Positions 8,392 through 63,783 are shown, numbered from the stretch's first letter. The stretch is 64,000 bases of DNA from Rhodosorus marinus CCMP1338 (GCA_029953675.1 JAMWBK010000003.1:1302001-1366000); one strand, 5' to 3'. Notes: a model not told the origin generated them from the sequence alone. Numbers and translations are program-made.

Positions 8392-8411
8392 GGGGTTACC
8401 TTAGTCTGGGG
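8392..8411 (+). repeat. Most gene-proximal copy of the 16-bp telomere-like repeat
   Basis: GGGGTTACCTTAGTCTGGGG, one mismatch to the GGGGTTACGTTAGTCT consensus. Confidence 0.7.
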
Positions 8412-8770
8412 CGAAGCTAGCAGAAGATCCGAAAATGGCACACTACATGGAAGCGATGTCCATCGAGCAGCCTGACGCATTGTACAAAGCAGAGAAGTTT
8501 AAGCTATCTAAATATGACGCGATTGGAGACCACACGGTCGACACCTTTGTGCCATTCTGTGCGGAGACCTTCGGGCGACTAGGCAAACGTGCGGATGAGT
8601 TCCTCCAATAGGTGAGCTCCCATCTACAGAACCCTGTAGGACAAGTGAGAGAAGCCCGAGCGATGCTGAATCGAACATTGTGGAAGGGGAACGCGCTCCT
8701 GGCCACACAAGCTCGTCGAACAGTCCAAGGGAACTACCCGATAGTCCCCATGGTAGAACGTAGCCACACC
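8412..8770 (+). mobile_element. Degenerate 3' end of an RLE non-LTR retrotransposon (old family)
   Basis: Translates AEKFKLSKY...TFVPFCAETFGRLGKRADEFL*...LNRTLWKGNA, the C-terminal restriction-like endonuclease motif, with a stop codon. Confidence 0.7.
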
Positions 8771-8775
8771 ACCCA

Positions 8776-9130
8776 CTAGGGGTTCACCCATAACGCAGTG
8801 GTAGTCTTCTTCTTCAATCTTTGTTCTCCTTTAGGGAGTCCTTTAGTAAATCGTCCACGTATCTGGGGAGTATTGACATGATAAAGTTGGATCCTTTCAA
8901 CGAGATTGATTTGGAAATGACATTTCCAAAGGCTATGCCACCGGATGGAGGGGGCTCTGGCCCTCGACCGATGGACGCTTCTACAGAAGTTGCGCCACCC
9001 CAACCTGTACCTGTACCTGTTCCAGTACCTGCTCCTGCACCTGTTCCTGAAACTGAAGCACATGTTCCACTTTACATCGACAGGAGCTGCGCCGCCCTCA
9101 AACTCCACCGGGATGCACCCCAGGTTACGT
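8776..9130 (+). mobile_element. ORF1 N-terminal remnant (family E), homologous to 12393-13025
   Basis: PPDGGG...(PV)n...IDRSCAALKLHRDAP aligns with PPD*GG...PIPVP...IDMSCGALKLHIDAP at 12.4 kb. It begins after AGGGGTT. Confidence 0.55.
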
Positions 9131-9183
9131 GAGGGGAACGTTCGTGGTGTGCTGCGGTAGGGAGCTGCTGAATAAAGGCTACA

Positions 9184-9841
9184 GGGTTTACGTTAGTCCG
9201 GGGTTCCATTCATCCTTGAGACGTGCGGGCGACTCGGACAGGCAGGGCTTGATTTTCTGCGAAAGGCGACTGGGGTAGACGCTGAACTGCCAAGAACAGC
9301 CCCTACCTATGACAGACGACTGCAGCAGACACTGGAGAGGGGAGAGTGCGGAAACCCCCTCGTAGAGACAACGGTTAGCGCTGATTCTGCCCAAGTCCCA
9401 GCCGCTCGGGAGGACAGCACGCCTGAGACGCCTGCCACGACAGCCCGTGATCGACTAGATTCGGAGCCTGACCCCTCCACCACTAGCGATCAACCAGTGA
9501 CCCCTGCGGAGCCGATGCAAGGACTTTCGACGGCCCAAGACCAGAGACAGGTTGCTCAACCGACTAAGCGCCGCAAGCCCGCCGACGGCGACGACCTGAC
9601 GACTGACTCCCTCTCGACGACCCATTCATGAGCAGCTCCTCGGACGAGTATAGGGTTACTTTAGTCTGGGTGCGTTAGTCTGGACAAAACGACATGATGA
9701 ACTAAAATGGAGCTGAGCCGATGGATGCACATGTGGAAGTTTACGGACCTCAAGTGGAGCCCCAAGGGTTCTTTTCCGGGTCAGGTATTCGATCTGATAT
9801 TGTAGCAAGGCACCCGACCAGCGTTTACGTTAGTCTGGGGT
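9184..9841 (+). repeat. Three telomere-like repeat tracts (9184-9205, 9653-9683, 9825-9841) separating retroelement fragments
   Basis: GGGTTTACGTTAGTCCGGGGTT; GGGTTACTTTAGTCTGGGTGCGTTAGTCTGG; TTACGTTAGTCTGGGGT. Confidence 0.8.
9206..9652 (+). mobile_element. 5'-truncated RLE element 3' end with a long C-terminal extension (family D)
   Basis: Reads PFILETCGRLGQAGLDFLRK followed by a long acidic/Pro/Thr tail with PTKRRKP, stop near 9630. Telomere-like repeats flank both sides. Confidence 0.6.
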
Positions 9842-10140
9842 AGGAGTACAACAAGGAGACCCCCTTGGACCTGCTCTACTCGCTCTTGCACTGGCACCTT
9901 TCCTCGAAGCACTACACAAAAGGTACTCGGAGGTAACTACTGTGGCTATTCAGGATGACATCACGCTAGTGGGCCCAACGGAGTCCCTTAAAGCGGCTCT
10001 ACTATGGAGTCAGAACACGCTCACTACAATTGGAGCACAACTCCAACCCGAGAAATTCACAATGTTTGGGCACGACCTTCCCTTGCTCGGCTGGTCACTC
10101 GAAACATGGCAGAGGTCAACGTTTCCCGAGAGGGAGTAAC
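9842..10140 (+). mobile_element. Reverse transcriptase core fragment, A-related
   Basis: GVQQGDP(L)GP...VAIQDDITLVGP...GAQLQPEK, with frameshift. Confidence 0.8.
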
Positions 10141-11569
10141 TGGATCCTTTACCGGGCAGCTGCCTACTGCAGCGCAACACTAATTCTATCACTATCTAGG
10201 GAAATGATCAGGCTCAACCCCGGCTCCCGAGGTCACTAGTTACGATAAAAAGAAAAATAAGGAATCACGGTTGCTCCGATTGATCCACCCGCAGAGAGCT
10301 TAGTGCGAGCTCTGCGTTGCCTGCCCAAATTGGTTTAATTGCGCTCTCACGTCGCGTAACGCTTCCTGTTTTGTCACCATATGTGCACACACCCATCTCG
10401 TAGGAAATCCTACGTGATTTGACCGGTTCTGCCAAAGGTTTCAATCGCTATCGGGATGAACACATCATCGGGATGTTCAGTCGCCATAGCCTCCTTGTAG
10501 TGCGCTAATTTCCATCTCTCAGCGTGTTTCGCGGCGTATCCGTTGGTGTCGTGGCTCTTAGGTAGGTGTCGTGCTTGGAGGGGTGAGACTACCGTCACAT
10601 CCATGGCAAAATGTTGCCATGTCCTAGGGTGGATGCCCACTATATCAGGTCGCAGATTCGAGTTCGTAAAGTAGTCCATGGGTTCTTGCTTGAACTCTAG
10701 AAATTGCCAACGGTTAAGCCATCTCGCCAGCTCAGTACATACCTCATCATGGCGCCTTTGCCACAGCCCAGTCGAGGTAAGACAGGGTGAACTCTTTCTA
10801 CGCTATTAGTACCATGCGTACTATGACAGGTAGTACACCTCTCCGTCGTGGGTAATCCTGGAACCGGCAGCCCTAGCAGTTGTCGAATATCCACCTGCAT
10901 TCCCGGACCGCTCAATTTTCGTGCGCCAGAGTGTGGTAAATCTCGTAGCCAGACGTCTGAACCGGCTCCTGCAGCGGAGCGTATTCTGGCTCTGAGTTCA
11001 CGATCGATCATGGGATCCGTGACTAGTCGGGTGAAAGCAGTTAGGTGTGCCTCTCTCGAGAGGGTTTGTTGTGTGGAACCTTGCTTTACCTCAGGCTGGT
11101 CCAGAGGGGGGGGGACCGACTCCAGGGGCAATAGGTAGGTACGTCGGGCTTGCTAGTTGGCGAATACGCCGGGAGGTCTCGGGGTTTAGGCGCTTTTTGA
11201 TCGCCTCACTCGCGGTCAGGATTTGAAGTGGTGAGTTGTCTGCAGAGTGAGGGAGACGTCGGGATTGACTCAGAGGCAGTCTTGCCGCTTCCAGGGTTTT
11301 GTCTAACACCATTTTCAGGTGAGGCCAATACCCCTTGTTCACCTCGAAGGTTTGCATCCATCTCGTGTAGAATGAGATGGGTTGGATGCGGCTTCTAGTT
11401 CAGAATCCTAGACCTCCCTACCTGCACGGGAGTGCCACTTGTTGCCATACCCGTGGTGTTCGTTCTGGGTCTTCCTCCATATTTGTTTGTAGACAGCCAA
11501 TTAGGCGTTCTAGTTGTAGTCGGGTCATTGTATCAGCTTCTTTTGCGAGAGTTCGTCCAAATTGATAGG
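10141..11569 (-). mobile_element. A-related element, 3' half, minus strand
   Basis: RARIRSAAGAGSDVWLRDLP, C-x2-C knuckle, LRPDIVGIHP, DVTVVSP, FIPIAIETFGRTG; carries the family-A 3' UTR motif GCTGCAGTAGGCAGCTGCCC. Confidence 0.85.
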
Positions 11570-12243: not shown

Positions 12244-12246
12244 TGA

Positions 12247-12282
12247 GGTTACGTTAGTCTGGGGTAGCGTTAGTCTGGGGTT
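12247..12282 (+). repeat. Tandem telomere-like repeat, about 2.3 units
   Basis: GGTTACGTTAGTCTGGGGTAGCGTTAGTCTGGGGTT. Confidence 0.85.
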
Positions 12283-12289
12283 CTAACGA

Positions 12290-13010
12290 TGACTAGTGCT
12301 ATCGTTCTGGGGTTAAAACTTTTTGGACTTTGGAATATTATCGAGGAGATAAAGCTACAATTGGACTGTTTGTGTGAGAGATATTTTCGAGTATGACTAC
12401 CCTAGAGCCTGTACCTCCAGATTGAGGGGGGTTTCCCATAGACGCCACAACGGAAGATGTGCCGGCCGCACATGGACCTGAGCCTATACCAGTACCTGTT
12501 TCCGACCCCGAACCTGGTTCTACACCTGGCACCGACGTGATTGCTCCCCCGGGAATTGACATGAGCTGCGGTGCATTGAAGCTACATATAGACGCCCCTA
12601 GGCGCAAGGCCTCGCTCTACAACGGGCTTATGGTGCGGTTTATGGATCTTTTAGCCCAGGCCCACGCCAATGGCACTGAGGACCACCTTCTGCAGCAGCT
12701 GAACCCCCCTGCACAATGCCCAACACCGACTTCGCGACCACTACCAGTCTACGAACCGGCAAACTACGCCACTGCAGCCGCCCGCCCGCGATCTCCCGAC
12801 GCCCGTGATCTCGATTCGAATGCATTCCCAGATCTAGAAACGGCCAATGAGCAAGCCCGGACAACCACTCGAGCTCAACCTCGGCCAATGAGCTGGACGA
12901 CACGCGTCCGTACCAATCAGACCCCTGCAGCCGCCAAGCGCTCGTTTTTCGCGAGCATTCATGGACTGCAGTACCAGAGCCAGAAGGACGTTGATGCATT
13001 AGGGGTTTGT
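12290..13010 (+). mobile_element. 5' end and ORF1 remnant of family E
   Basis: Starts right after the repeat tract; Pro-rich ORF (12393/12459-13025) homologous to 8821-9132; cut off by the next A element. Confidence 0.55.
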
Positions 13011-13047
13011 GGAAAACAGCGGTAAAAGTTTATAAGCAGGTACACGT

Positions 13048-14619
13048 ATGATTGTGAAGGAGGTACGGGGGCCGTACCCCGAGCCTCTTGTGATCCCGGG
13101 CCCACACCCCTCGGGTACACGGGAAATGGAGAACGGGCAGCAGCCGCAGCAGCAGCCGCAGCAGCAGCATACAGGAGAAGAACAGGACGCAGAGATGAAT
13201 GCAGAAAACAGAGCAGATCGGCAGGGGGGAGCCGACCCAGCTGCCGCATTTCTCCACCAGCTGCGCAGCTACGACCGGTGCTACAAAGCCCTGGGAATTG
13301 GCGAGACTGACATCGTCGACTTTTACCAGGCAGTCTTCAACCTTTACTCGCGGATAAATTGTGCTAAAGAACTGCAAGGAGTGGCAGCCCGTCTGAACGA
13401 GCTAGCCAAAAAACAGCACATGTGGCAAGGTGGACCAGCCACTACGACCTCGCCTGAACCCGCGGAGCAGCACCCGCGGACGGCGGCAGTCAATCAATAT
13501 GCGCCAGAACCGATCAGCAATCAGCTTCCGGAGGGGACAGGTGTCCTAGCCTCAGTGGACTATGCCACGGCCTTCCCTGTCATCGGGACCAGCAGCACAC
13601 GGCCAACATACGCTCAGCGCACTGTCGAAAATACTCCAGCTCGAGCATCAGAGGCTCAACTGCGACCAGCAGGACGCCCGGGCCCACAGACCCAGCAGGC
13701 AGCACTGCGACAGCTGCATGCCACAGTGGGTGGGTCCTCCTGGGGACCTGAGACCAAACCGGTACTGGCGACCTTGAGGAATGTAAGACCGCCACGGCTG
13801 GACGAGGTAGCCCCATCGGACTTCACCACGGTTCTTTGCAGAGCCTTGGGGATTCCGAGCTCTTATGTGGCGCACGTGGACTTCATCGCTTCCCACGCGT
13901 GCTTACTATGCCATCTGGAAGCGATTCCGATTCTACAAAGCGCCACCTCTCGGGGCGTTTTCAGGACGGGGATTTTCGGATCGTTCACCCGGAGACATCC
14001 CGATCGGCAAGTGACTCTCTACACGGGACAGGCACTGGATACAGACAACCTGCTGGGCTATAATGAACGTCAGCACATTGCCCCAGCGAACATCGGGGCC
14101 CAGACCCTGAAAGGGGCCATTGAACAGACTATCCGGATCTGCGCGAGGCTTCGCAGAAGGAAACTCTCGTTCAACACTCTAGCAGCGATACACGAGTACC
14201 TGGAGAGCAGACTCGGAGACCTACAAGCCAGAGAACGTACTCCAACGGTACAAGGGGAGAGCGCGGAACCCCGAGCGCCTGCAGCCGCCACGAACGCAGA
14301 CCCTGAAGCCTCGTCCCTTACAGGGGACGCACAGGCAGCCCGTGGGACAGTCGACGCTCCGGGTAATCCCCTAGCGACTTCCCAAGTACCTGAAGAGGAT
14401 GCACCCGAGGATAACCCTCATGCGGAGCTCCCCTGCAACCTGCCCCAGCCTCCTCAACACAAGCGGTCGCGAGTATCCACTGATGGCACAGGCCAGGATA
14501 CCGAGATGACTCCGGCAGCCGTCGAGGCTCCACAGGGCAATACTGCACCCCAGGCCGACCACACTGCCACCCATCACGCGATGGACACACAGGACAGCCA
14601 GGGAACACCTACGCAATAA
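13048..14619 (+). CDS. Family A ORF1 protein (523 aa), intact
   Basis: Open ORF beginning MIVKEVRGPYPEP; the start is conserved in copies at 18555, 52225(-) and 63669(-); ends in TAATG. Confidence 0.85.
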   Translation: MIVKEVRGPYPEPLVIPGPHPSGTREMENGQQPQQQPQQQHTGEEQDAEMNAENRADRQGGADPAAAFLHQLRSYDRCYKALGIGETDIVDFYQAVFNLYSRINCAKELQGVAARLNELAKKQHMWQGGPATTTSPEPAEQHPRTAAVNQYAPEPISNQLPEGTGVLASVDYATAFPVIGTSSTRPTYAQRTVENTPARASEAQLRPAGRPGPQTQQAALRQLHATVGGSSWGPETKPVLATLRNVRPPRLDEVAPSDFTTVLCRALGIPSSYVAHVDFIASHACLLCHLEAIPILQSATSRGVFRTGIFGSFTRRHPDRQVTLYTGQALDTDNLLGYNERQHIAPANIGAQTLKGAIEQTIRICARLRRRKLSFNTLAAIHEYLESRLGDLQARERTPTVQGESAEPRAPAAATNADPEASSLTGDAQAARGTVDAPGNPLATSQVPEEDAPEDNPHAELPCNLPQPPQHKRSRVSTDGTGQDTEMTPAAVEAPQGNTAPQADHTATHHAMDTQDSQGTPTQ

Positions 14620-17600
14620 TGCCCAGGGGACAAGGGGGAATCAAACGAAGACGCGATGAGCCTCTGTTCTTCTAGGATCGTCAAGCCTGGGTCAAACGGT
14701 GGACCGACTTCGTTGGCCAAGTTACGACAGGAGACAGGCATTGGACGCGCCTAACACACTGCCCGGTACCCACACGGCGCTTTGTGCCCCGTGCCCACGT
14801 CAATACCTGGAGCCGCCTTCTTCGTGCAGCTCTTGAGATTTCCATGGACACAGGCTAGCGTTGGCGGGTGCGCCAACGCTAGCCTACTTCTTGTCGGACT
14901 TCCAGGCCTGGTGCTAGGACGTTGTGCACTTGACACCGGTATTCAGGTCACACATGTGCTCGAAGGAGAATTCGATACGGTGTGGACCCCGCTTGAAGGC
15001 AGGGCGTCCCTACTGCAGCAGAATACTGCCCCACCGGGAACCGAAGCGACTCGCCGCCAAGCCTTAGGACGCCAGAAACAAGCCCTTAAACTGGCACACC
15101 TCGGTCGCCTGTCGGACGCTGCTCGTCGACTGCAGGCAACGGAAATGGCTCCCTTCACCGAGACTACCTGGCGCCAACTGCAAGGACTCTTCCCAGAATC
15201 TGGCTCAGGTGACTTACCAGACGAGGCGGCGGAGGCCCTGGAATCACTGCACAACCCTGACGACACGAATCTTCAGAGCCGATGAGATGCCACAAAATCC
15301 GCTGATGAGGGTCTCCTGTCGATTGTGGCACGTCTTCCGCAGGGCAGGAGCCCCAGCCCCAGTGGAATGCGCGCGGAACATCTCCAAGGCGCCAATCAAC
15401 AGACGCAAGTGGCTTTGATCCGCGTACTGCGACAACTAGCGACAGCTCCGGAGAAGTTTCCCACTCCGCTGACGCGTGCCCTGCGTAGCAGCAGACTACT
15501 GCCATTCGCGAAGCCACGGAAGGAATCGGCTCCCCAGGAAAACCCAGGCGTTCGGCCCATCGGCGTCCCTGAAGTTCTGCGAAAAGTGGCGACTCAATGG
15601 ACCCTTCGCGGGGTGATCGACAGGGTGCGCACGCTCCTGGTCCATTACAACTAGGGATCGGAGTCAGTGGCGGATGCGAACGCTCACTTCACGCGATCCA
15701 GTCCCATCTGTCATATGAAATAGACGTGGTGGTGCTTAGGCTTGACCTCGAGAATGCATTCAACAGGATTGATCGACGCCTCGCCAAGAAACTCGTGGAC
15801 CAGCACTTTCCGGAGCTTGCGGCGGTTTACAGACTTGGGTATGGAAGCGACGCAGTGGACTCGCCGACGCTCTGCGGCTGGCGCTCTGCACCTGCAGAGA
15901 ATCAAACGGAACACTCACGACTGACGCTCCAACGTAACCCCAGACTAACGTAACCCCGAACTATGCTCCCATCTCTAGGGGCCCGCCTACAACTCAACAA
16001 ATGCATGCTCTACGGACGAGCCTTGACGACGGCGCGAGTCATCAATCGCGAGATACCTGGCATACATGTCACCCGAGAAGGCGTCACTATCCATTCGATC
16101 CCGAGGACCAGCACTTTCCGGAGCTTGCGGCGGTTTACAGACTTGGGTATGGAAGCGACGCAGTGGACTCGCCGACGCTCTGCGGCTGGCGCTCTGCACC
16201 TGCAGAGAATCAAACGGAACACTCACGACTGACGCTCCAAGCAGCTACGGGAGTACAACAAGGAGACCCTCTTGGGCCGGTGCTACGTGCACTAGCACTC
16301 GCACCGTTCCTAAAAGCTCTACGAACAAAGTTCTCCGATCTAACGATTGTCGCTATCCATGACGATATTACGATCGTGGGACCCCTGCAGGAACTGAAGC
16401 AAGCACTAGCCTGGAGCCGAACTATGCTCCTATCTCTAGGGGCCCGCCTACAACTCAACAAATGCACGCTCTACGGCCGAGCCTTGACGACGGCGCGAGT
16501 CATCAATCGCGAGATACCTGGCATAAATATCACCTGAGAAGGCGTCACTATCCATTCGATCCCGATAGGAAACCGGGAACATATCGAGCACGAGTGCCGT
16601 GCGCTTCAAAATAAGCACGAAAAGCTCATCAAGGAAATAGCACAGCTACCGCAACATGAAACTTATGCACAGGTCGCATTGTTCAGGTACTGCGCTGAAA
16701 CGCGCCTAGAACTGAAGCAAGCACTAGCCTGGAGCCGAACTATGCTCCTATCTCTAGGGGCCCGCCTACAACTCAACAAATGCACGCTCTACGGCCGAGC
16801 CTTGACGACGGCGCGAGTCATCAATCGCGAGATACCTGGCATAAATATCACCTGAGAAGGCGTCACTATCCATTCGATCCCGATAGGAAACCGGGAACAT
16901 ATCGAGCACGAGTGCCGTGCGCTTCAAAATAAGCACGAAAAGCTCATCAAGGAAATAGCACAGCTACCGCAACATGAAACTTATGCACAGGTCGCATTGT
17001 TCAGGTACTGCGCTGAAACGCGCCTAGATTACCTGCTACGATGCCTAGCCTACCCGTTCGGCCGCAGTCTGGCACGGGAGGCGGATACCATGACGAGATA
17101 TAATCTGGAAACCTTGCTCGGAGGCCTCGCTACCTCTGGCATGGAGGACGAGGAGCACCTGGGACACATCTGGGAACAGATTGCGCTGCCTTGCCGGTGG
17201 GGGGGATAGGGTTCGCTACTCGACGGCGTATCCAACCTATCGCTTACTACTCGGCTTGGACAAATACCTTTCGAAGCAATACAGGGGACTGGCCTTACAT
17301 TGCTGAGCTGCAGAGGCAGGTCTATACAGACAGAACTCTGGCTACGAACACCGCGACACGACTAAAATGGTCCACAGAACACCTCGCAGACCAGATACAA
17401 TCATCTGCTCGAGCGATACAACGCAGGCTGCGCCCGAAACTCCGCCGCGGATCAGAAGACTGGCCACCCTGCAGCAGACGAGGGAAAACCCCCCAGGAGA
17501 CGCCCCAGGAGACCGTGGCGATTGGAATAATGGTTCTACACAACAATCTCTCTCTCTGGAGGCACACCATTCAGCATTCCAACGCCTGGTTAACAATCCG

Positions 17601-18392
17601 CGCGTCTCTGGCGAACATCGCGCCCGAATCAGGTCCGCGGCGGGCTCTGGATCGGGAGTCTGGCTGCGCGAACTGCCGACGTTGGAGCCGAAAAAGCTGA
17701 GCTCGATCGAAATGCTGGTGAATATCCGACAACTACTGGGGCTACCGATTCCAGGGCTGCGAACTACGGAAAAATGTACTCGATACCGTGGTAAACACGG
17801 AGCAAATGGAGTACAACGCTTTCATCATTGCCCCACGTCAACTGGCCTGTGGCAACGTAGGCATGACGAGATATGCACGGAGATCGCAAGGTGGCTGAAC
17901 CGGTGGAACTTTGTGGACATCGAGCAGGAGCCAGAGAATTACTTTGAAAAATACGGGCTACGGCCAGACATCATTGCTACGCATCCGAGGACATTTCAAC
18001 GGTATGCGCTGGACGTGACGGTTGTGTCTCCTTTGCCAGGGAAGTATCTGAGGCGTAGTCAGGAGGAGAGTGGATATGCAGCAAGACGTGCAGAGAGGTG
18101 GAAGAAAGCGCACTACAAGGAGGCGATGACGATAGAACACCCGGGTGACAAGTTCATCCCAATTGCAATAGAAACATTTGGACGGACTGGACCGATGGCA
18201 CAGGAGTTTCTGCGGGACAGCTGCAAGCATTTGTTGCACTGGAGCCTAGAACTGAGCAATATAAGATCGCAGATAAACCGGCAACTTTGGCGAGGTAATG
18301 CGGAGATAGCGCTAGGCGCTTTGCGCGTAGACCAGTTGGAGAATCCACCTCTGCCTGTTTTTTCTTTAGGACGTAGCATGAGACCCCGGTAG
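14619..18392 (+). pseudogene. Family A ORF2 (RT-ZnF-RLE), disrupted
   Basis: Stops near 14673, 15283 and 16535, frameshifts near 15650 and 17205, and internal duplications; the RLE segment is open over 17367-18392. Confidence 0.9.
15931..15957 (-). repeat. Perfect 27-nt telomere-like tract in reverse orientation inside the A RT gene
   Basis: AACGTAACCCCAGACTAACGTAACCCC is the reverse complement of GGGGTTACGTTAGTCTGGGGTTACGTT. Confidence 0.9.
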
Positions 18393-18472
18393 CGGGGTTG
18401 GAGTAAGCATTCCCCTAGATAGCGATAGAAGTAGTGTTACGCTGCAGTAGGCAGCTGCCCAGTAAAGCTTAC

Positions 18473-18493
18473 GGTTACGTCAGTCTTGGGTTA
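18473..18493 (+). repeat. Telomere-like repeat between two head-to-tail elements
   Basis: GGTTACGTCAGTCTTGGGTTA directly follows the A 3' terminus CCCAGTAAAGCTTAC. Confidence 0.8.
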
Positions 18494-21192: not shown

Positions 21193-21414
21193 AAATGACT
21201 GCACGACGGATTGCTGTTGATTGCCGATGGCTTCAATCATTGTCTTGGTCAAGTTCGGCCCAGCCAGAGGCACCGCCGGGCGTGAAATTGAACATGAAAA
21301 GCCCCCTCTGGGCAGGGCCAGCGGAAAGAAGACCTTGTGGTCACCTCTTAAAACCGCCCACCACAGCCACCACCAACGCCAACCTCATCCTTTCCCAATC
21401 TAGGACGGAGTCTG

Positions 21415-21456
21415 ACGTTAGTCTGAGGTGAAAGTTTACGGTTACGTTAGTCTGGG
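21415..21456 (+). repeat. Telomere-like repeats interrupted by an 11-nt A-type 3' tail
   Basis: ACGTTAGTCTGAGG-TGAAAGTTTAC-GGTTACGTTAGTCTGGG. Confidence 0.75.
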
Positions 21457-23399: not shown

Positions 23400-23509
23400 G
23401 GGTTACGTTAGTCTGGGGTTAGACGTAGTGTTGCGCTGCAGTAGGCAGCTGCCCAGTAAAGCTTACGGTTACTTTAGTCTCGTATTCTGGGGATACGTTA
23501 GTCTGGGGT
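23400..23509 (+). repeat. Telomere-like repeats flanking a ~45-nt family A 3' tail
   Basis: GGGTTACGTTAGTCTGGGGTTA, then GACGTAGTGTTGCGCTGCAGTAGGCAGCTGCCCAGTAAAGCTTAC, then GGTTACTTTAGTCT...CTGGGGATACGTTAGTCTGGGGT. Confidence 0.88.
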
Positions 23510-24405
23510 AAAACAAAGTTCTCCGATCTAACGATTGTCGCTATCCATGACGATATTACGATCGTGGGACCCCTGCAGGAACTGAAGCAAGCACTAGCCT
23601 GGAGCCGAACTATGCTCCCATCTCTTGGGGCCCGCCTACAACTCAACAATTGCACGCTATACGGCCAAGCCTTGGCGACGGCGCGAGTCATCAATCGCGA
23701 GATACCTGGCATACATGTCACCCGAGAAGGCGTCACTATCCATTCGATCCCGATAGGAAACCGGGAATAAATCGAGCACGAGTGCCGTGCGCTTCAAAAT
23801 AAGCACGAAAAGCTCATCAAGGAAATAGCACAGCTACCGCAACATGAACTTAACGCGCAGGTCGCATTTTTCAGTTACTGCGCTGAAACGCGCCTAGATT
23901 ATCTGCTACGATGCCTAGCCTACCCGTTCGGCCGCAGTCTGGCACGGGAGGCGGATACCATGACGAGATATAATTTGGAAACCTTGCTCGGAGGCCTTGG
24001 TACCTCTGGCATGGAGGACGAGGAGCACCTGGGACACATCTGGGAACAGATTGCGCTGCCTTGCCGGTGGGGTGGATTGGGGTTCGCTACTCGACGGCGT
24101 ATCCAGCCTATCGCTTACTACTCGGCTTGGACAAATACCTTTCGAAGCAATACAGGCGACTGGCCTTACATCGCTGAGCTGCAGAGGCAGGTTTATACAG
24201 ACAGAAATCCGGCTACGAACACCGTGACACGACTACAATGGTCCACAGAACACCTTGCAGACCAGATACAATCATCTGCTCGAGCGATACAACGCAGGCT
24301 GCGTCCCGAAACTCCGCCCCGGATCAGAAGACTGGCCACCCTGCAGCAGACGAGGGAAAACCCCCCAGGAGACGCCCCAGAAGACTGTGGCGATTGGAAA
24401 AATGG
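23510..24405 (+). mobile_element. Family A internal fragment (RT motif C to pre-zinc-finger region)
   Basis: TIVAIHDDITIVGP...WEQIALPCRWGGLG; closely similar to 16325-17530. Confidence 0.88.
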
Positions 24406-54126: not shown

Positions 54127-57100
54127 TTAGCCGGAGGCCTCAATTTTTACGAACACGGGGGGTTTCTTCAGAATATACTGGAAATTTGAGTTGGTAACAG
54201 TAATGGTACTCGCGTTAGTCTCGCTCGAGGAGAGGAGTACCGCCCCGTAGTTGAAATGAGTCGTCTTCTTGGGATAAATATCGTCGAGAGATACATTGCT
54301 CGACTCCTTGACGCTAACCACCGTGGATGTCGGTACGCCACCCTTTACCCTCACCTTCTGCATCGAAAAGTTGTTAACGTTATGGATTGAAACGACACTG
54401 GTTGTTGTTGTTGCATTGACGATGTTCAGGTCTGAAAACGTCACATTGCTCAAGTAGAACATGTACACGGGATCTTGGACCCTAGTCGCCGTGACGTTCA
54501 CGACTGTGACATTGGAATGTCCAAAATCATTGAGCTCCGTGACGACGGCGTACGCACTATCTTCGGCGTAGATGTTGCTCGCCCAAATATTATGATTCAC
54601 CTGATCTGGGTGACCGTGATCTTGGATAACCATTCCGTATCGGCAATTGTATGCCTGCACATTCTCAACAGTAACGTCCTGCGAACCATCGGTAACTTCC
54701 ACAGCTCCGTACTGAGCCGTTCCACTCGAGTTCCCATCCGAGGCTGTAATAGGGCAGTTCTCTGCGACAACATTTTCAATGGTAATGTTATAGGTCTTTG
54801 TCAGGCCCAAGTTGCCGGCCTTCCTCTCCACTGAGGCCACCCTGCTGGAAGCCCACCCTGCGTTTGACCTTCTGCCGCCGACTCTTGAGCACCCTTCCTC
54901 CCCTCGCCCTGTCTCCGAGGCTCGTGACACCGACATGGCAGAAGCACCATCGGCCTCTCCGAATCCGCTGGCTCTGGACACCCTCAGTCAAGACTCCGCT
55001 GCTGAAAACCCTGTGTCTACTTTCTTCAGGTCTTTTAGTTCCTTCGTGCGCCCTCCACGTGAGCGTCGTGCGGCTCCTGAGCCTCCCTCCGAGGCACCTC
55101 CTCCGGATATTCGATCTGCCTTCCCGACTGAGGGGAGGCCCGATGTCTGAGTCTTCCTCCTCCGCGTGCGTGTCGTCCCGGTTACCCCTGTTTACCAGTG
55201 ACCGCTCAGCCTGGCATGAGCGTGTTCTCTCGTGGTTTTCGCACCTTGTCGCCTCCTACCCGGACGGTTCCCTTCCCCTTTGTCGTCAGAGCACGGCCGT
55301 ACGGCTCCCTCGTCGACTTCATAAGCCCCTAGGATTGGTGTTGGATTTTCTCTGGCAGCAGGTCGCCGCGAACCCTCACTGCTCTCTTCGCTGGGAACTC
55401 TTGTTCTTTTTTCCCCGCCTCGTGCTCACCTCCTCTACCGTCCCCCTCAACCCACATCCTCGCCGGGTCCACCCTCGCCGAAAACTGCAAATGTTCCTTT
55501 CCGGCGACTTTGAGGACTTCGAACGTCTTTATTTCGCTTCTCTCTCTTCCTTTTCTCCTAGTGCTTCCTCAGCTTTTAGGTCTTCTCGACAGAATCGGGC
55601 GCGTCACACGGTGGCAGGCGGTGATCTGCGGCGGGCAGCCGGGATCCTCCAGCAGCGGCAACCTGTGGTTCCATACTCCGATGATCTTTCTTCACCGCTC
55701 CGTTTGCTCTTTCCCTCGGAAGGCTCCCCTTGGGACTCCTCGTTTGAATCAGTGTTGGAAGAGTACCGCGCCGCGCCACATCCCAGTGCGCGGTTAGCGG
55801 TCAATCTGGAGGCGGTGCGTGAGTTGGTTCATGATGCTCCGAAGGGCCGTTCCCCAGGGCCCTCGGGGCTGCGGGTGGAATATCTCCGTTTCTTAAGTGA
55901 TGAAGGTTTGAAGGCGTTGGCGTGGGTGGTCGAAGCGCTTGTGAATGGTGATCCCCTGTGTGAGTGTGCGTGGTTCTTGGTCGGGCGTTCGCAGTTGTGT
56001 CTGCTTTCGAAGCCCGGCCACACGGCCTCGAGCCCTGCTATTCGCCCTATTGGCCTGGTTGAGGTGGTCCGCAAATTGGCGGCGCGATGGTTAGTGAAAA
56101 TCCTGGTTCCCGAATCCCGCCGTTTCTTTGGGCACGTGCAGTTAGGCGTGGGCTATCGTGGTGGCTGTGAGTTGTTGTCTGTTTTACTCCGTTCGGAAAT
56201 GGCGTACTCCCCAGATTCTGGGCTCCTCTCTGTAGATTTTACCAATGCGTTCAACCGCGTCTCTCGTCCGGCTCTCATGCACGTGGTGCGCGAAGTCTTC
56301 CCTGTAGGCTTTCCCTTTGTTAGTAGACTTTATTCTCCGCTTGGTCGTGGGGCTACCTATGACACCCTTGGCGCTTCCTCACACACGTTTGCGGCGCGCA
56401 CAGGGGTACAACAGGGTGATCCCTTGTCCCCTTTCCTACATGCCTGTGGACTACAACTCGTCTTGCTTTGTCTTCGCTCCGAATTCCCGCAGGTTCGTAC
56501 GGTTGCATACCACGACGACGTGTGCCTCCTGGGGCCCCTGATACTCTAGCACTCGCTTATGATCGTCTCCGCTCCTTGGCTTCGCGGGTTGACCTGGAGG
56601 TTAATCATCACAAATCGTTCTACTGGGGAGGTGTAGCTGCACAAGAGCAGCAGGTACCTGCGTCGTTCCAGGATATTTGGAGACCGGATGGTTTTGTCCA
56701 CTTAGGCATCCCCTACGGGTCGCCGTCCTTCGTTGAAGGCGAGTTGCTGCAGCTCCTCGGTAAGCACAGACAGCTGGTTGCAGAGCTTCGACGGCTACCT
56801 CCGGGCTTTCTCCAGTGCTCGTTGTTGCTGTTTCGGTATTGTTGCAGTCAGCGGTTAACCTATTGGCTTCGCTCACTTCCAACTCATTGGGGCCGGTGGT
56901 TGGCCACTCGTGCGGATGCTGAAAGTTTCCGTGACCTGGGGTATTTTCTCGATGAAGAGCTGAGCGCTCTGCCGCGACCCACCTGTGATGTTGTGCGCGC
57001 CCAGGTAGGCCTCCCATTGCGATTGGGGGACTGGGCCTCTGCAATCGTGTTGTGGTCCAACCTGCAGCCGCAGTAGGGGCCTGGGGAACCGCACTTCCCA

Positions 57101-58857
57101 CTTTGAGCAGTTTGGGTATCTCGAAGTTCCGCAATTTGATGGCGAGCCTCTCGCGGGGTGTCTTGCTTCCCAGCGTACCGGAAAGCGCCCAAGACTTGTT
57201 TCTGGAGCTCCAAACCGCCCTGAATTCCTGTACTAGTCTCCCCGAAACCGTTCAACCCCGTCTTCCTGACTGGCGAGCTGTATTTGACCGCTCTCGAGGC
57301 TCCGCCCCGGGGATTCGTCCTGCGCCTGAACCTGTTCTAGGGGAGATTGACCCAGTAGTTGCCGCAGAAGAAGAAGTTCCAGTTGATCCTCCTGATGATT
57401 CCCAGCGCGCTGGGAGCCGAGCTCAAGCACGCACGGATGCGCTGCAAAATATCCTTTCTTGGGACTTGCACCGTGCTGCATATGGCCGACTCCTCGCGCA
57501 GATGGTCTCATCTTCTCGCGCTCGCGCCCGCCTACGTAGTCTTGGAGGGGTTCTTAGCTCTCAGTGGCTCATGACCGTACCAGCCTTTCCGCCACTCACA
57601 CTGTCGAATTTCGAAGTGCGTACTTCACTGCGCTTATACCTCGGCTTACATCAGCCCCCTTGGCCGTACGATATGGGTTCGTCGTGCCCTCTCTGCTCTC
57701 AGACTGAAGACAACGCAGATTTCACGCCCACCTGCTCGCTAGTTGCCCGGCGGTGAAAGGTGCTCGAACCAGCCGCCATACACGGATCTTGAACCTGTTA
57801 TACCGGGAACTTCGGCCTATAGTCCGGCAAGCCGGTCTGGAAATCGAACGTGAGAAACCTTTACCCGTCGCGGACTTTCAAAATGATGAACGCCGTGTAG
57901 CCGACCTGGTGATCACCTGTGACGACAGCCGCCGTACCACATACGTTGATCTTGCTGTTCCTAACCCTCAAGCTAGTCGTTATCTCCCGGCTGCGGGGGA
58001 GCGCCGTGGATCTGCCGCCGCCAGCATGAGACGCCGCAAAGAGATCAAATACGCGGGGGCTTTGTCTTCCCCTGGTGTTCGTGCTTCGGCACTAGCACAT
58101 CGCTTGGTACCCCTGATCATTGAGTGCTTTGGGTTCATGGACTCTGTTGGTTCTCGCTGGCTTCGGGAGTTGTTCCGCGAACGCCCTGACCGTCTTCAAT
58201 CGTTGTTTACCCGCTTAAGTTTCCTGCTGTGGCGCATGAATGCCGCTTTGATGTTGGAGGCGCGAGTACTTCGCCGCACTTAGTCTTTTTTTCCCCTCGG
58301 GGTTTTTTTTTCAGCCTCCGATTAAACCATTCATTCATTCAGTTGCCGGTAGAAATTTTCACCGCATCGCTCCTAATACCATTCCCGTAAATGTTTCGAA
58401 TGATTCCATTCCTAACAGGCACGGCTTGTGCAGTGTTGTTGGCCCGACATTCAATTCCGTCTCTGGACGAGTTGTAGAAATTGGCCCCGTCGATAAGGAA
58501 CTTGCTCCCCTTGATCTCCAGAAGTGCCGCGCGTTCAGACGGATCTACTGTTCCAAGGTTCCCGACAGCATTCAAATTCTTGATTGTCACTCCATCAGCC
58601 ATAATCCTTATCGCATTAATGGCAGCCCCGGGTACCAAAGTCACCGATATGTCCGAAAGCTTCAAGGGATTGCTTACTACCACCATCTCAGTTAGGTTCC
58701 AGTGGCATCCAGCCCCTGAGAGATGCGCGTTTTCAACCGCATTCGTCACTTGATCGTTGAGGGAGGCAGTGCAGTTAAGTTGAATGTGCCCATACGCTCC
58801 AACGGAGAATATGGAGCATACCGCGATCATCAGCTTTATTGCGGGTCCCATCCTCAT
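54127..58857 (-). pseudogene. Secreted right-handed beta-helix (pectin-lyase-like) protein gene split by a family C insertion
   Basis: N-part 58857-58341 (signal-like MRMGPAIKLMIAVCSIFSVGAYG) plus C-part 54809-54127 totals 1200 nt, an open 399-aa ORF (…KISTGN|LGLTKT…). It is rich in beta-helix-type N/V/I/T repeats and N-x-S/T sequons. Confidence 0.82.
54819..58340 (+). mobile_element. Longest family C copy (3522 bp, 5'-truncated in ORF1) with 9-bp TSD
   Basis: AGTTGCCGG at 54810-54818 and 58341-58349; ORF1 tail to 55150; ORF2 55143-58283 with three 1-bp frameshifts (~56540, ~57025, ~57725); tail CATTCATTCATTC. Confidence 0.95.
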
Positions 58858-60479: not shown

Positions 60480-60705
60480 CAAAGAACTTGATACAAATGC
60501 GTGTAGATTTTATTCAACCAACGCCCTGGGCGTGACCGTCTGATGTCCTCGTCCTGAAGCCGTTTAAGTTTCTTGCCTGTGGCGTACCCCCCCTCCCTCA
60601 CTGTGATGTTGGAGGCGAGCGAGCGACTTCTACGGCCAACTCAACTCTGTTTTTTAGAACCTCAACGATTTTTCTTTCAGCCTTCGACTAAACAAATTCA
60701 TTTCA
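60480..60705 (+). mobile_element. Very degenerate C-like 3' end
   Basis: GTGACCGTCTG...TTAAGTTTCTTGCCTGTGGCG...GATGTTGGAGGCG...TTTTCTTTCAGCCTTCGACTAAAC resembles the C terminus. Confidence 0.6.
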
Positions 60706-62060
60706 GAATTGGATGAAGATGTGAAACTTCAACATTTCAAAGCACTTCAAGACTGTTTTAACGATAAATGAATACGTTTTATCGCATTACATTGTATGTA
60801 CGCATTACAAACGTGCGCCAAAGTTGGCTACAGTTACCCCTTAACGTCTCCCTGACTTTCTGCGCTGTCAGCCAGGCCCTGATAATGTCATTCGTTCGTT
60901 CGATAATGTCGTTCTGTGCGACTACAACCAGGCGCCACCATACGTTTACTGTTCCGTCTTTGAAATACATTGTATATACGTTTACTGTTCTGTCTTTGAA
61001 ATACCCAAAGTTTTATGCTGTTTTTGCCGATGCTTACACCTCAGCCCCTGGGATGCAGACTTTGTCTGCCGGCCCCGGGGCTGATGGAGGACCTATAATT
61101 AGCATGGTTTACAAAAGCATTGCGGCCGAGACGGACATAACACTGGACTATGGAACCATTCTATTTTTAGTACCATGAAGGACCTCTTGGGGCAGGATTG
61201 GGCCTGAGTTGTTGTTCCGTGCATGAGAGAGTATACGAGATGAGTTCTCTGGTAATGTGGATAGGGGGTTAAACCGCTACGAATAAACACACAATTCAAC
61301 AGGTTATGAGCCCAGCTCAAGCTGGAAACAGTTAAGCCGTGGTGAATTGCTCCCTTGGGCATTAAAAGGTTTTGACGAGAGGTGTTCCCGGAAGGATGGG
61401 ACTCTATGGTAGAGAAGGTTGAAGGAAGTCCTTGGCAAAGGAAGACCTCGCCTAGCTGATTGTACCAAAGCAAGGAACTAGAAGGGCGCAATTGAGCATG
61501 ATGACAGACTGCACGCCGTTGCAGAGAGTCTACCAATTCGGGCGGAGGAAGCCTGCAAAGCCCCCCGGGAGGAAGGAGATAAAGATTGTGCTAGGCGGAT
61601 AACATGGACCATGTTTTCCTGGACTATGTTTGCCAATTACATCCGGATGACAGTGAAGACCACCCCACTGGCAGCTCAACGACCACCAGTTTGATGTTGA
61701 CTGAAGCACACAGTCAATCATTTACGATATTGACTGACTTTTCAACAGACTGAATACTGACAATGAGGGGAGAGTTTAGTAGCCGTTATGATGACGATGG
61801 TGCCGCATCGCAACTCCAAATACAAATTATAGAACGATAAGTATTGCAGCAACCTGAAGAAGTTGAAGTCGGAAGGCTGAGAATGGTTTACGCTGCGAAG
61901 TAGGAGAACTGTATCGAATCTATCGTGGTTTACCAGAAAATACTGTACGAATATTGTTCGCGAAACTGAGGGCGAAGCCAATCTTCGTGGCACTATGGCC
62001 GTGGCTGCGTATACGGACTGACTTAAAACTGAGATCTTGGAGCTTATCTAGCAAGAAGTT

Positions 62061-62350
62061 GGAGATTACGATCCGATCTGCGCTCCGACAGTAGGTTTCA
62101 ACACAGCCCGACTGGTAATTGCAATAGCATTACACAACGAATGGGTTCTACATCAATTGGATGTGAAGATGGCCTACTTGAGCGGCAATACCAACGAAGA
62201 TGCATAGATGTAACAGTCAGAAAGCTACGCAGACGGTACAAACCGCGTATGCAAATTGAACAAAGGCCTATATGGTCTAAAACGACGTGCAAAGCATGGA
62301 ATCAGACATTGACAGTTGATCTGGAGCGTATTGGTTTTGAGCGAGGGGAT
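62061..62350 (+). mobile_element. Ty1/copia reverse transcriptase relic
   Basis: My translation: DYDPICAPTVGFNTARLVIAIALHNEWVLHQLDVKMAYLSG...VCKLNKGLYGLK...AWNQTL, with stops and a frameshift; matches the copia RVT_2 motifs. Confidence 0.85.
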
Positions 62351-63039
62351 CGATGCACTGTCACCAGCAGCAAACCCACGAGGTAAAGAAGCAGCCTCCG
62401 AAGGAACGGATTTAAACCTAGACATCGGTTCACGCAAATCCCGAACATGGACGGAAAACGAGGCAATCAGAGCCGGCGACGCTATTTGCAATACGAGCGT
62501 AGAATTGTGCAATAGGAGATGTCGTTGTTGACAGTGGGGTTACGGATCACGTTTTGGGGAATACGAGATTCCTCTCGAAGCTGAGAAGGATCGAGCCGAA
62601 AGAAGTCTGGACAGCAGTTGGCAGCAAACTAACAAGGACAACTACAAAAAAAAGCAAACAGGACAACAGTTTCACAAAACAACGGATGAAGATAGGTGTT
62701 AAGTGACTTTGGTCTGGAGGGGTGGTGTTAAGGCGTACATGCCAAAGTCTACACACAATGGAGCGAACGCTACGTTACGTTCCGGAGCTGACGGGCGAGC
62801 TCATCAGTAGTATTGACGAATGAACCCACGTGTTCCCTTACAAAGGTACTCATCACTAGTATGAACAAATGAACCGAAGTGTTCCCTTACAAAAGTCTAT
62901 CAATGATGCCGTGGTGGAACACTCGACACATCACGAGGAAGAAGAAGAGTCTTCTACGAGGACGCAGAGCTCGTAGAAGAACTAGGCTCAGAAGCTGCGT
63001 CCGAAGATGCGCTAGTAACGGGTCAAGAACTATATCCGA

Positions 63040-63783
63040 TGAAATACAGGCCTTGTCGGCTAGGTCTGGAGCAACCAGCCGTTAACCGCATTACGGCGGA
63101 GCCTAAAGAACCCATGAGTGCAGAAGAAGCCATGGAGAGTAGTTTTTCCACCCGAACGGAGAGATCCGCGGATGCTGACCAAGCGTTGGAATGCACAATG
63201 GTGTGCCTCTCGAGAGAGGGTTTGTCGTATCAGAACCATTATTCCATTCTGCGGTCCGTCTGCCGCGCCTTCCCTGGCCCCAAGTCCACGTCTGGGGTGA
63301 GTCTGCTAGCTGGTAGAGGCATCGAGTGACACCAGTGAGGTCGCTGGTGTTCCCAATGCGGGAGTACAACTTAAAGATCGCCTTGATGAACTCCTGGACG
63401 GCTGCTTCCCCAATGCCCACACCATGACAAAACTGGTCACAGGTGCGCAGCTGTTATATGAAAGAGGCGGCTGGAACATTAGTGGCATCAGTCTCATTCC
63501 TGCTCCCCGCCTGCGTAACGTCTTCTGCTGGTGTTGATGTCCTTGGTTGCTGCTCTGATACCACAGCGCGGTGCTGTAGTGCATGTAACACTTCCATGGC
63601 ACCCGGTGCCGGTGAACCGGGGATGAGAATTGGCTCTGAGTTCGGCCCCCGCGCCTCCCGCACTATCATATTCTTCTGGTTTCCGATTCCAACTTCGCTC
63701 CACGCCAACCCAGAGCTTTTTGCTCCACGCCAACCCCGAGCTTTTTGCTCCACGCCAACCCCACAGTTTGTCCCCCCAGACTA
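63040..63783 (-). mobile_element. Internally deleted family A element, minus strand
   Basis: ORF1 start MIVREARGPNSEP at 63669, near-identical to 51830-52260; joined to a pre-RLE fragment (63040-63260); 5' junction TAGTCTGGGG (63783-63774). Confidence 0.82.

Follow-up and report, generated by a model that had tools for sequence, protein, structure and literature searches.

The question raised by this locus is whether a 16-bp repeat that recurs among decayed retrotransposons of the red alga Rhodosorus marinus is the telomere repeat of this organism, occupied by a dedicated element family, as the first-pass annotation proposed. The observations behind that proposal were confirmed in part and are largely real, and the interpretation is supported in part. 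The DNA analyzed here (the window) is a 64-kb stretch, JAMWBK010000003.1:1,302,001-1,366,000, of a 3,353,001-bp (3.35-Mb) chromosome-scale contig of assembly GCA_029953675.1. The window also shares 17,811 bp of exactly matching sequence with L002. The locus, 1.30 Mb away from one contig end and 1.99 Mb away from the other, is therefore not subtelomeric: the adjacency to a chromosome end that marks a subtelomeric array is lacking at this mid-contig position, and the description of the elements as subtelomeric arrays is not supported. According to the R. marinus genome paper, the genome is compact (8392 genes in 31 Mb) and only 6 of the 13 large contigs extend from telomere to telomere; telomeres are reported there, with the motif itself not printed.

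An island of RLE-bearing non-LTR retrotransposons

Positions 8392-63783 (~55 kb) form a gene-free island of decayed non-LTR retrotransposons of at least three related families, with unique DNA to its left and, probably, to its right. At the left edge (8392..8411, +), unique DNA is followed by GGGGTTACCTTAGTCT GGGG and a 5'-truncated element; the right edge (63747..63783, -) is a remnant, TAGTCTGGGGGG ... TGTGGGGTT, with apparently non-repeated DNA beyond.

In all three families the coding region runs from a reverse transcriptase (RT) through a CCHC knuckle to a PD-(D/E)XK restriction-like endonuclease (RLE); family A has this order and, in addition, ORF1, a separate upstream frame of ~520 aa without a recognisable domain. 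Pfam RVT_1 was matched by Fam1, B and relatives, and by tblastn the RT fragments of family A could be aligned to these RVT_1-bearing sequences. For the closest full-length relative, the top solved structures were R2 proteins, then LINE-1 ORF2p, with the alignment spanning the CCHC knuckle; P0002 is matched by the CCHC region of R2. An RLE alignment of A1, A_44216, P0068, Fam1, B, P0002, P0003 and P0016 showed the columns C-x2-C...H...C, RHD, RPD/AD, D-V, K and E to be common to A, Fam1, B and the outside relatives, and the APE domain Exo_endo_phos was not matched in any ORF scanned. Judging by RT type and the predicted CCHC and PD-(D/E)XK motifs, A, Fam1 and B are RLE-bearing non-LTR retrotransposons. 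The CRE-clade REL motif reads C-x2-C-x6-H-x3-C ... RHD ... E ... RAD ... E (PMC12857005); the family A motifs (C-x2-C...H..C, RRHD, E, RPD, D-V) follow this order with different spacing, and R2-type elements share most of them.

Family A copies, at 66-77% identity, are old. Fam1 is represented by two head-to-tail elements (33012..41834, -), of which 33012-37862 (-) retains intact ORFs including RT (34220-36136) and RLE (33066-34226), and by a fragment (19384..21062, +) 98% identical to 35646-37324 (-). The longest family B element, with RT and RLE, occupies 54798..58337 (+); the other copies (25570-26116, 30994-31216, 42217-44186, 52498-53202, 59310-59854 (-)) are 95-99.6% identical. Both families bear short repeat tails: that of Fam1 is (TCCAGTAAAG)n, without the 16-mer, and family B copies are not joined to the 16-mer either.

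Distribution of the 16-bp repeat

The unit, GGGGTTACGTTAGTCT, is G/T-rich (12 of its 16 positions are G or T on one strand, which includes a G4 run and the core GGGTTA) and telomere-like in look. In the window only one copy is exact; allowing ≤2 mismatches gives 10 copies (0.03 expected after shuffling) and allowing ≤3 gives 13 (0.30 expected). Scanned in every one of the 16 phases with ≤2 mismatches allowed (expectation, 0.07), the window yielded 10 intervals on the + strand, all inside 8390-23512, and - strand intervals at 15928-15963, 47962-47979 (GTTGGTCTGGGGTT, remnant at 47963..47979) and 53215-53232 (GCGTTGGTCTGGGGTT, also a remnant). A further - strand match at 6982, within a gene, is probably due to chance, and weaker - strand remnants occur at 52253-52274 and 63747-63783. 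The range 8392-63783 that had been assigned to the repeat is right for the retroelement island but too wide for recognisable 16-mers, which are missing from most of 24-64 kb.

Tandem copies exist but, rather than being long, reach ~2.5 units at most (9652-9683, 12245-12281, 15931-15957, 23467-23509); 15931-15963 was the only 16-mer array detected by TRF scoring. The association with retroelement junctions, in turn, was borne out for nearly all copies and, on the + strand, for every one, each coinciding with a homology breakpoint of retroelement fragments. The G-rich strand is + in the left arm and - in the right arm, that is, it runs inward from both flanks, and this polarity relative to the flanking DNA is, on both sides, that expected of a telomeric repeat.

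A further 42 kb of R. marinus DNA contained no 16-mer. Exact 20-/24-mers across the unit junction had no match in JGI metagenome/metatranscriptome contigs, IMG/VR or GTDB genomes, and a literature search found no paper with this motif. Canonical telomere motifs were not found in the window or in the other loci compared.

Organization of the family A copies

Elements and units alternate along the left arm. A composite A2-like piece (8412..9183, +), made up of an RLE C-terminal coding fragment, a further segment and a degenerate unit (~9123-9147), ends in ~36 nt (...AATAAAGGCTACA) with the same 3' motif as the L008 element. A unit plus GGGGTT (9184..9205, +) separates it from a 5'-truncated A2-like fragment that comprises the RLE C-terminus onward (9206..9651, +; 78% to L008 1630-1689) and is followed by ~2 degenerate tandem units (9652..9683, +). 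The next fragment (9684..9820, +), internal, RLE-coding and truncated at both ends, is 86% identical to L008 1325-1469; the L008 element extends ~460 nt beyond the matched stretch, and the 3' truncation is capped by a unit plus GGGGT (9821..9841, +). An RT fragment with the YxDD region (9842..10135, +) and an inverted 3' half (10136..11569, -) come next, the latter with a rearrangement junction, and no unit, after its 3' end. After a diverged 3' end (...GGTAAAGCT) stand 2.3 tandem units (12245..12281, +).

The most complete copy, A1 (13009..18472, +; ORF1 at 13048-14619, RT and RLE degenerate), begins after ...TTAGGGGTT and ends in CCCAGTAAAGCTTAC. It is internally rearranged at 15794-16240 and 16391-17028, and the sole exact unit (1.7 units, inverted; 15931..15957, -) lies within such a rearrangement. 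One unit (18473..18492, +) separates the A1 3' end from the complete 5' end of the following copy (18493..19382, +; 62-nt leader, ATG at 18555), which is joined to a Fam1 fragment. Further along are a unit, an A 3' end reduced to 10 nt (GAAAGTTTAC) and another unit (21413..21456, +); a 5' portion whose 3' truncation within the coding region is directly capped by AGGGTTACGTTAGTCT (21457..23398, +); a unit, a 46-nt 5'-truncated A 3' end (23421-23466) and ~2.5 units, with a 4-bp GGTT duplication (23399..23509, +); and a 5'-truncated RT fragment 95% identical to A1 (23510..24408, +).

In the right arm, copies of family A are few and lie in mixed orientations. A 3' part (44187..44971, +) is followed by GGTT alone and then unrelated DNA, a copy at 48699..52263 (-) starts, with its 5' end complete, after GCTCTGGGGTT (52264-52274), and a 5' part at 63160..63746 (-) has its first 19-25 nt triplicated, with GGGTT before each copy. 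Some family A fragments have no adjoining repeat (44971; L007).

Site-specific insertion into a pre-existing repeat

The 3' motif CCCAGTAAAG[C/T]TTAC occurs three times. At 18473 and 23467 it runs directly into GGTTACG..., as had been described for the family at large, but at 44971 it leads into GGTT and unrelated sequence. Diverged 3' ends at 9183, 12244 and 21439 likewise adjoin the unit, and at each 3' junction the sense strand of the element is joined to the G-rich strand (GGTTACGTTAGTCT). The complementary observation, that 5' ends follow the end of a unit, holds for all four complete 5' ends (13009; 18493; 52263, -; ~63746, -), which stand directly after (G)GGGTT.

In all three testable cases, deletion of the insert together with 4 nt (GGTT; 3 nt for 21413..21456, +) regenerates an in-phase 16-mer array, with 1-2 mismatches at the right offset versus 7-19 at all others, so that the 16-mer is a pre-existing target rather than an element tail. 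As read from these junctions, family A inserts site-specifically, by target-primed reverse transcription (TPRT), at one position of the 16-mer, ...TCTGG^GGTT^ACG.... The footprints of TPRT comprise a fixed 3' end, variable 5' truncation (copies sharing the 3' end range from 10 nt and 46 nt to 5.5 kb), the 4-bp GGTT duplication and a sequence-specific target. With conserved RLE columns and site-specific insertion into a tandem repeat, family A is indeed, by its predicted features, an RLE element dedicated to the 16-bp repeat.

The target is shared by diverged elements. In sub-lineage A2 (L008, 9183) the 3' end is different and the abutment to the unit the same, so the two 3'-end lineages, GCTTAC and GGCTAC, have a common 16-mer flank. 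L005, a JGI transcript of a different R. marinus strain (sample 3300016967, in which the relatives are named Rhodosorus marinus), consists of a unit, a 5'-truncated A, a unit and a 5'-truncated A; it keeps GTTACGTTAGTCTGGGGTT intact, yet the element is only ~66% identical to A1 in nucleotides and 62% in amino acids. The 16-mer thus displays conservation between strains, one of the properties of a telomeric repeat.

Origin of the repeat and of the island

The G/T-rich strand asymmetry, the inward polarity, the unit-capped 3'-truncated elements and the conservation in a diverged strain all favor a telomeric origin. It is plausible, with a chance at or slightly above even, that the 16-mer is the telomere repeat of Rhodosorus, most likely telomerase-made and either present-day or ancestral. 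Also on the side of a telomeric reading stand the lack of canonical telomere motifs in the window and the other loci, the failure of canonical and Cyanidioschyzon-type telomere probes when applied to three mesophilic red algae (PMC3622300) and the absence of the 16-mer from the further 42 kb. Given its mid-contig position, the 55-kb cluster probably represents old chromosome ends, buried as a relic, rather than a present-day subtelomere. The complete scenario, in which family A targets a telomerase-made 16-mer and the island is an internalised relic, seems to us about equally likely to be right or wrong. The island would then be the decayed internal remnant of two telomeric arrays, head to head, produced by end-to-end fusion or end joining, as for the MoTeR 'relics', and may now serve as a heterochromatic or centromeric haven. 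Fam1 and B, which are younger and make no use of the 16-mer, would have settled there later.

Element fragments would have been cut on the side facing the old end and then recapped with new repeats. The unit-capped 3'-truncated fragments (9820, 23398) match such erosion and de novo repeat addition because the 3' end would face the terminus; 5'-truncated, telomere-capped MoTeRs are the mirror case (PMC7367193). Alternatively, internal priming or deletion could account for the capped 3' truncations. Against the relic scenario we count the mid-contig locus, the arrays of ≤~2.5 units with a single exact unit, the lack of a match in DNA collections or literature, the few right-arm A copies with their mixed orientations and the repeat-less A fragments.

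Among the alternatives, the 16-mer could be a non-telomeric minisatellite, centromeric or heterochromatic, with family A specialised on a satellite block, possibly the centromere. We consider this a possibility of lesser weight, although the locus is mid-contig, the window contains no terminal array, the gene-free island exceeds 55 kb despite the compact genome (8392 genes, 31 Mb), young Fam1 and B copies are still accumulating in it, and RLE elements target microsatellites and other repeats besides telomeres (PMC4640811). Satellites, however, rarely remain unchanged across strains in which element identity has dropped to 66%; the strand asymmetry and GGGTTA core are telomere-like, the opposite polarity of the arms requires an extra inversion, and unit-capped element fragments are unexpected of a passive satellite.

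It is improbable that the contig is a chimera in which the assembler joined two true chromosome ends head to head, in which case "subtelomeric arrays" would be literally correct. The head-to-head polarity of the arms fits such a join, a 1.7-kb inverted repeat (98% identical; 19397-21062 versus 35646-37311) could mislead an assembler, and telomere-to-telomere status is reported for only 6 of 13 large contigs. But joined live telomeres should show long, clean arrays, whereas the units are degenerate and in ≤2.5 copies; family A copies are old (66-77% identical), and an overlap join of oppositely read ends requires real inverted sequence.

The 16-mer could also be an element-encoded 3' tail repeat, made by the family A RT, with elements inserting into one another's tails, given the short repeat tails of Fam1 ((TCCAGTAAAG)n) and B, the near confinement of the unit to family A surroundings and the resemblance of the A 3' end, GCTTAC, to GGTTAC of the unit. 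This is very unlikely and is disfavored by the in-phase empty sites with a 4-bp duplication (3/3 cases); copies of the unit stand, moreover, after unique DNA (8391; L005:150) and after fragments with an internal truncation (9820, 23398), the GCTTAC and GGCTAC lineages have an identical flank, and the 16-mer is missing after some A 3' ends (44971, 10136). Finally, although many RLE elements (CRE/SLACS, Utopia, R2) target multicopy RNA genes (PMC4640811), membership of the 16-mer in a spliced-leader, snRNA or rRNA gene is effectively refuted by its head-to-tail 16-nt periodicity, by 0 Rfam matches in the window at the gathering threshold, with only two irrelevant bacterial sRNA chance matches at E≤1 in 8-24.8 kb, and by the lack of tRNA genes.

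Comparison with known systems

Like internal head-to-head telomere relics (the human 2q13 fusion site and MoTeR relics), the island has the G-rich strand running inward from the flanks, degenerate repeats and a chromosome-internal position; unlike them, it spans ~55 kb and consists mostly of retroelements, and its center has been overwritten by younger families, so that there is no readable fusion point. R2, specific for 28S rDNA, is the best solved-structure match and resembles family A in its RT followed by CCHC knuckle and RLE, in TPRT, and in the fixed 3' junction with variable 5' truncation, whereas RT similarity is only 25-30%, the targets differ and family A has a separate ORF1.

The telomere-repeat-specific RLE non-LTR elements of the CRE group, MoTeR1/2 (Magnaporthe oryzae), FoTeR (Fusarium oxysporum) and Cnl1 (Cryptococcus), share with family A an RT with a C-terminal CCHC/RHD/(R)AD-type restriction-like endonuclease, a short tandem G-rich target, arrays of full and truncated copies with 1-3 repeat units between them, repeat-capped truncated copies and internalised 'relics' (PMC7367193, PMC12857005). 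Family A differs in its red algal host, in a 16-bp rather than TTAGGG target, only putatively telomeric, and in its clear 4-bp target duplication. In MoTeR and FoTeR, the 5' end points toward the terminus and the sense strand is followed by C-strand repeats; family A has the opposite orientation because its sense strand continues into the G-rich strand, and its 3' end, not the 5' end, would therefore face the terminus. TRAS1 and SART1 (Bombyx mori) resemble family A in endonuclease-dependent, position-specific insertion into telomeric repeats (putatively so for A), but have an APE-type endonuclease (R1 clade), poly(A) tails and a 5-bp target unit. The TRAS1 and SART1 families use opposite strands, so that either orientation is possible.

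Element families of the island

The island (8392-63783), which holds no called genes over the annotated part covered, is a patchwork of retroelements from three related families, A, Fam1 and B. The Fam1 element at 33012-37862 (-) has intact ORFs, with the RVT_1 domain in an ORF of 638 aa. The best solved-structure matches of P0002, the closest full-length relative protein, are R2 retrotransposon proteins, with a second aligned stretch corresponding to the R2 CCHC knuckle. In the region following the reverse transcriptase (RT), alignment of A, Fam1, B and their outside relatives revealed conserved C-x2-C...H...C, RHD, RPD/AD, D-V, K and E columns, a pattern that marks a restriction-like endonuclease (RLE). 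Domain search detected no APE domain in the scanned ORFs of the window elements and their relatives. Given the presence of RT, CCHC and RLE columns and the absence of APE, the elements are RLE-type non-LTR retrotransposons. No identical protein records were found for the window ORFs (638-aa Fam1 RT and 341-aa A RLE), and an initial homology search yielded no match bearing the NCBI name Rhodosorus marinus, so that no annotated retroelement protein of the assembly was detected. Family A is classed here as a new site-specific RLE retrotransposon.

Copies of family A are 66-77% identical, compared to 98% for Fam1 and 95-99.6% for B; by this measure, family A appears to be old, and Fam1 and B young. 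Family B is represented by seven copies with different 5' truncation points (among them 25570-26116, 30994-31216, 42217-44186, 52498-53202, 54798-58337 and 59310-59854 (-)), is strongly clustered in the island and appears to have been recently active. Its 3' end, ...CCCCTCGGGG-T-run...CAGCCTCCGATTAAACC, is followed by an (ATTCG/TTCG)n tail, and the Fam1 3' tail is (TCCAGTAAAG)n. In L001 (positions 1-60 and 1114-1200), a Fam1-like transcript from another Rhodosorus data set (JGI 3300017118), the Fam1 3' end abuts the start of the Fam1 RT ORF, and an internal deletion fuses the N-terminal part of RT to the 3' end; these joins indicate that Fam1-like elements are transcribed, and are arranged head to tail there too. 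A 661-aa open frame at 18555-20540 (+), which begins as family A ORF1 and continues as Fam1 beyond the junction (19383), may represent a chimera of the two families or have arisen by recombination between homologous ORF1 regions.

A 16-bp repeat at retroelement breakpoints

The 16-mer GGGGTTACGTTAGTCT is found in the window once exactly, 10 times with two or fewer mismatches and 13 times with three or fewer (shuffle expectations, 0.03 and 0.30). Because junction copies may begin in any phase, all 16 rotations were scanned at two or fewer mismatches (expectation 0.07). The plus strand yielded ten intervals, every one within 8390-23512, with all copies at breakpoints between retroelement fragments. 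Minus-strand matches lie at 15928-15963, 47962-47979 and 53215-53232, with one more in the sulfotransferase gene that is probably due to chance. At 52264-52274 and 63747-63783, weaker minus-strand remnants of the unit lie just before the 5' ends of family A copies. The longest arrays in the window span about 2.5 units, and a further 42 kb of R. marinus DNA, from two loci, lacks the 16-mer. The first-pass annotation, which had reported the repeat at retroelement junctions, was largely right in substance, but just one of the copies is exact, and most recognizable units fall within the left quarter of the range that it gave.

The repeat as the target of family A

Because Fam1 and B have repeat tails, a serious alternative was that the 16-mer is a tail made by family A itself, which reconstruction of the empty sites makes very unlikely. 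Both flanks are kept for three insertions: one of 46 nt (23421-23466), a remnant of 10 nt (21430-21439) and one of 2 kb in L005, a transcript with an A-like element. Once the inserted sequence is taken out along with 4 nt (in one case, 3 nt), an in-phase, unbroken 16-mer array with 1-2 mismatches remains, compared to 7-19 mismatches at all other offsets. Thus, the repeat array predates the insertion. The family A insert is bounded by a 4-bp GGTT duplication, with the upstream flank ending in ...TCTGGGGTT and the downstream flank starting with GGTTACG...; from these flanks, the target nicks would be staggered by 4 bp. Complete family A 5' ends are preceded by GGGTT in four of four cases, and the 3' end is common to truncated copies; junctions of this kind are typical of target-primed reverse transcription. 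Together, the endonuclease columns and the in-phase empty sites bear out the earlier claim of a site-specific RLE element that targets the repeat. Should the telomeric reading discussed below fail, the element would still add a clear-cut case to the RLE LINEs that are specific for a repeat, and one for which the stagger of cleavage is defined.

The endonuclease ORF of family A matches L005 (JGI sample 3300016967), and related proteins in the same data set carry the name Rhodosorus marinus. Between the L005 element and A1, the most complete copy (13009-18472 (+)), identity is about 66% at the DNA level and 62% at the protein level, yet the two share one anatomy: ...CAAGTC, GGGGTAACGTTAGCCTGGGGTT, a 5'-truncated A ending ...AATAAAGCTTAC, CGTTACGTTAGTCTGGGGTT and another 5'-truncated A. 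A second transcript, L008, defines the sub-lineage A2, which terminates 3' in AATAAAGGCTAC; the copy at 9183 has this same 3' end and adjoins the unit at the same place. Across these sequences, the 16-mer target is much better conserved than the elements that parasitize it. The segments 9206-9651 and 9684-9820 were considered as element 5' ends and rejected, L008 showing them to be RLE-coding fragments. The contig encoding P0002 has no recognizable telomere-like flank, and at another locus, an A-like fragment lies beside an NHL-repeat gene with the unit absent, indicating that relic A fragments occur outside the repeat too.

Possible telomeric identity of the repeat

The evidence tips slightly towards a telomeric identity of the 16-mer. 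One strand of the unit consists of G and T to 75% and contains a run of four Gs (G4) and the core GGGTTA; as leads, TTAGTCTGGG is one base off the repeat of Yarrowia, and fission-yeast repeats have GGTTAC as their core. The G-rich strand is the plus strand in the left arm of the island and the minus strand in the right arm, so that on both sides it runs inward from the flanking DNA, which is unique on the left and apparently non-repeated on the right; two chromosome ends set head to head would have this polarity. The unit directly caps two securely 3'-truncated copies (9684-9820 and 21457-23398), and also comes after unique DNA (8391) and, in L005 (position 150), after sequence that is not part of an element. 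Capped 3' truncations are what would be expected if elements with the 3' end towards the terminus were eroded and repeats were then added de novo; these truncations could also result from internal priming or deletion. The mirror image is seen in MoTeRs, the 5' ends of which face the terminus and which include 5'-truncated, telomere-capped copies and internalised 'relics' (PMC7367193).

Counting against telomeric identity are the internal position of the repeat, its short, degenerate arrays and the right arm, where family A copies are few and in mixed orientations. The locus (JAMWBK010000003.1:1,302,001-1,366,000, assembly GCA_029953675.1) lies deep within a chromosome-scale contig of 3,353,001 bp, far from its ends, which refutes, for this island, the subtelomeric location proposed in the first-pass annotation. 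Next to the island, the product of the sulfotransferase gene (6633-7808) is identical, save for one intron, to KAJ8906663.1, a protein from the unicellular red alga Rhodosorus marinus (class Stylonematophyceae); the DNA around the gene for this protein agrees exactly with the window over 17,811 bp, which gives the contig position above. Membership of this gene in a subtelomeric family was rejected: its two paralogues are found on other contigs, one at 1.65 Mb and the other at 1.05 Mb, where the DNA is ordinary and gene-dense and the 16-mer is lacking.

Neither the window nor any of the loci contains a canonical telomere motif as a dimer (TTAGGG, TTTAGGG, TTTTAGGG, AATGGGGGG and others). In the genome paper, one or both telomeres are reported for 12 of the 13 large contigs, six of them being telomere-to-telomere; telomeres are mentioned, but the motif is not printed in its main text or supplements. 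Exact 32-, 24- and 20-mers over unit junctions had no match in IMG/VR, JGI metagenome and metatranscriptome contigs or GTDB genomes, and the unit, in several rotations, was not found in the literature. Experiments on mesophilic red algae (Porphyridium, Rhodella and a third class) were unsuccessful with TRAP primers and with probes of the canonical and the Cyanidioschyzon type (PMC3622300); red-algal telomere data are still described as 'missing or fragmentary' in a review from 2020 (PMC7046594). With most red-algal telomere sequences unknown, the locus supplies a concrete candidate motif. If the unit is telomeric, the template in the telomerase RNA would be expected to be a rotation of AGACTAACGTAACCCC and to cover more than a single unit.

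The fuller proposition, namely, that the 16-mer is the telomerase-made Rhodosorus telomere repeat, parasitized by an RLE lineage oriented oppositely to the fungal telomeric elements, and that the island is a fossil of an end-to-end fusion or a centromere derived from telomere arrays, is tentative, and we put it somewhat below an even chance. If true, this would be the first telomere motif for mesophilic unicellular red algae, an unusually long, yeast-like unit within Archaeplastida and a long irregular telomere unit outside fungi, along with a red-algal lineage of telomere-specific RLE retrotransposons in reversed orientation and a datable chromosome-fusion or telomere-internalization event.

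History and other features of the island

Fam1 and B never adjoin the unit. In the simplest history, telomeric or telomere-like arrays would have been invaded by family A, the A-bearing arrays would then have been internalized, and Fam1 and B would have colonized the island later. A present role of the island as heterochromatin or a centromere is possible.

Several rearrangements involve family A sequence. Its RT region contains a perfect (100%) 318-bp tandem duplication (16391-17028). A duplicated 139-bp segment adjacent to it (15794-16240) encloses 1.7 units of the 16-mer in inverted orientation and a 149-nt piece copied from downstream. An RT/RLE segment forms a hairpin-like inverted duplication (11083-11569 and 11760-12243, 94%) with a 190-nt spacer. 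At 63697-63765 (-), the first ~19-25 nt of the family A 5' end (GGCGTGGAGC AAAAAGCTC) are triplicated, with GGGTT before each copy, which could reflect 5'-junction template jumping or repeated short insertions.

Directly after a truncated Fam1 fragment, the 26-nt unit AATAATAAACGACGGGAGACGTTGGT is repeated four times in tandem (21087-21190). An ORF of 363 aa at 31256-32347 (+), with a signal-peptide-like start, MMRLCGLIFVTLVGFTMA, followed by 9-aa (27-nt) and 34-aa (102-nt) tandem repeats, is related to a repeat ORF at 44980-45525 (+); Pfam gave only a weak DUF6438 match, and the two look like a pair of repeat-protein genes embedded in the retroelement island. The 3.3 kb at 59855-63160 are lower in G+C (about 46%), lack long ORFs and match none of the three families.

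Comparison with known systems

Family A functionally resembles TRAS/SART as well as MoTeR, FoTeR and Cnl1, the fungal RLE elements in telomeric repeats. It differs from the latter three in its red algal host, 16-bp target and clear 4-bp duplication. FoTeR and MoTeR elements have the 5' end towards the terminus and lead into C-strand repeats (PMC12857005), whereas the sense strand of family A runs into the G-rich strand.
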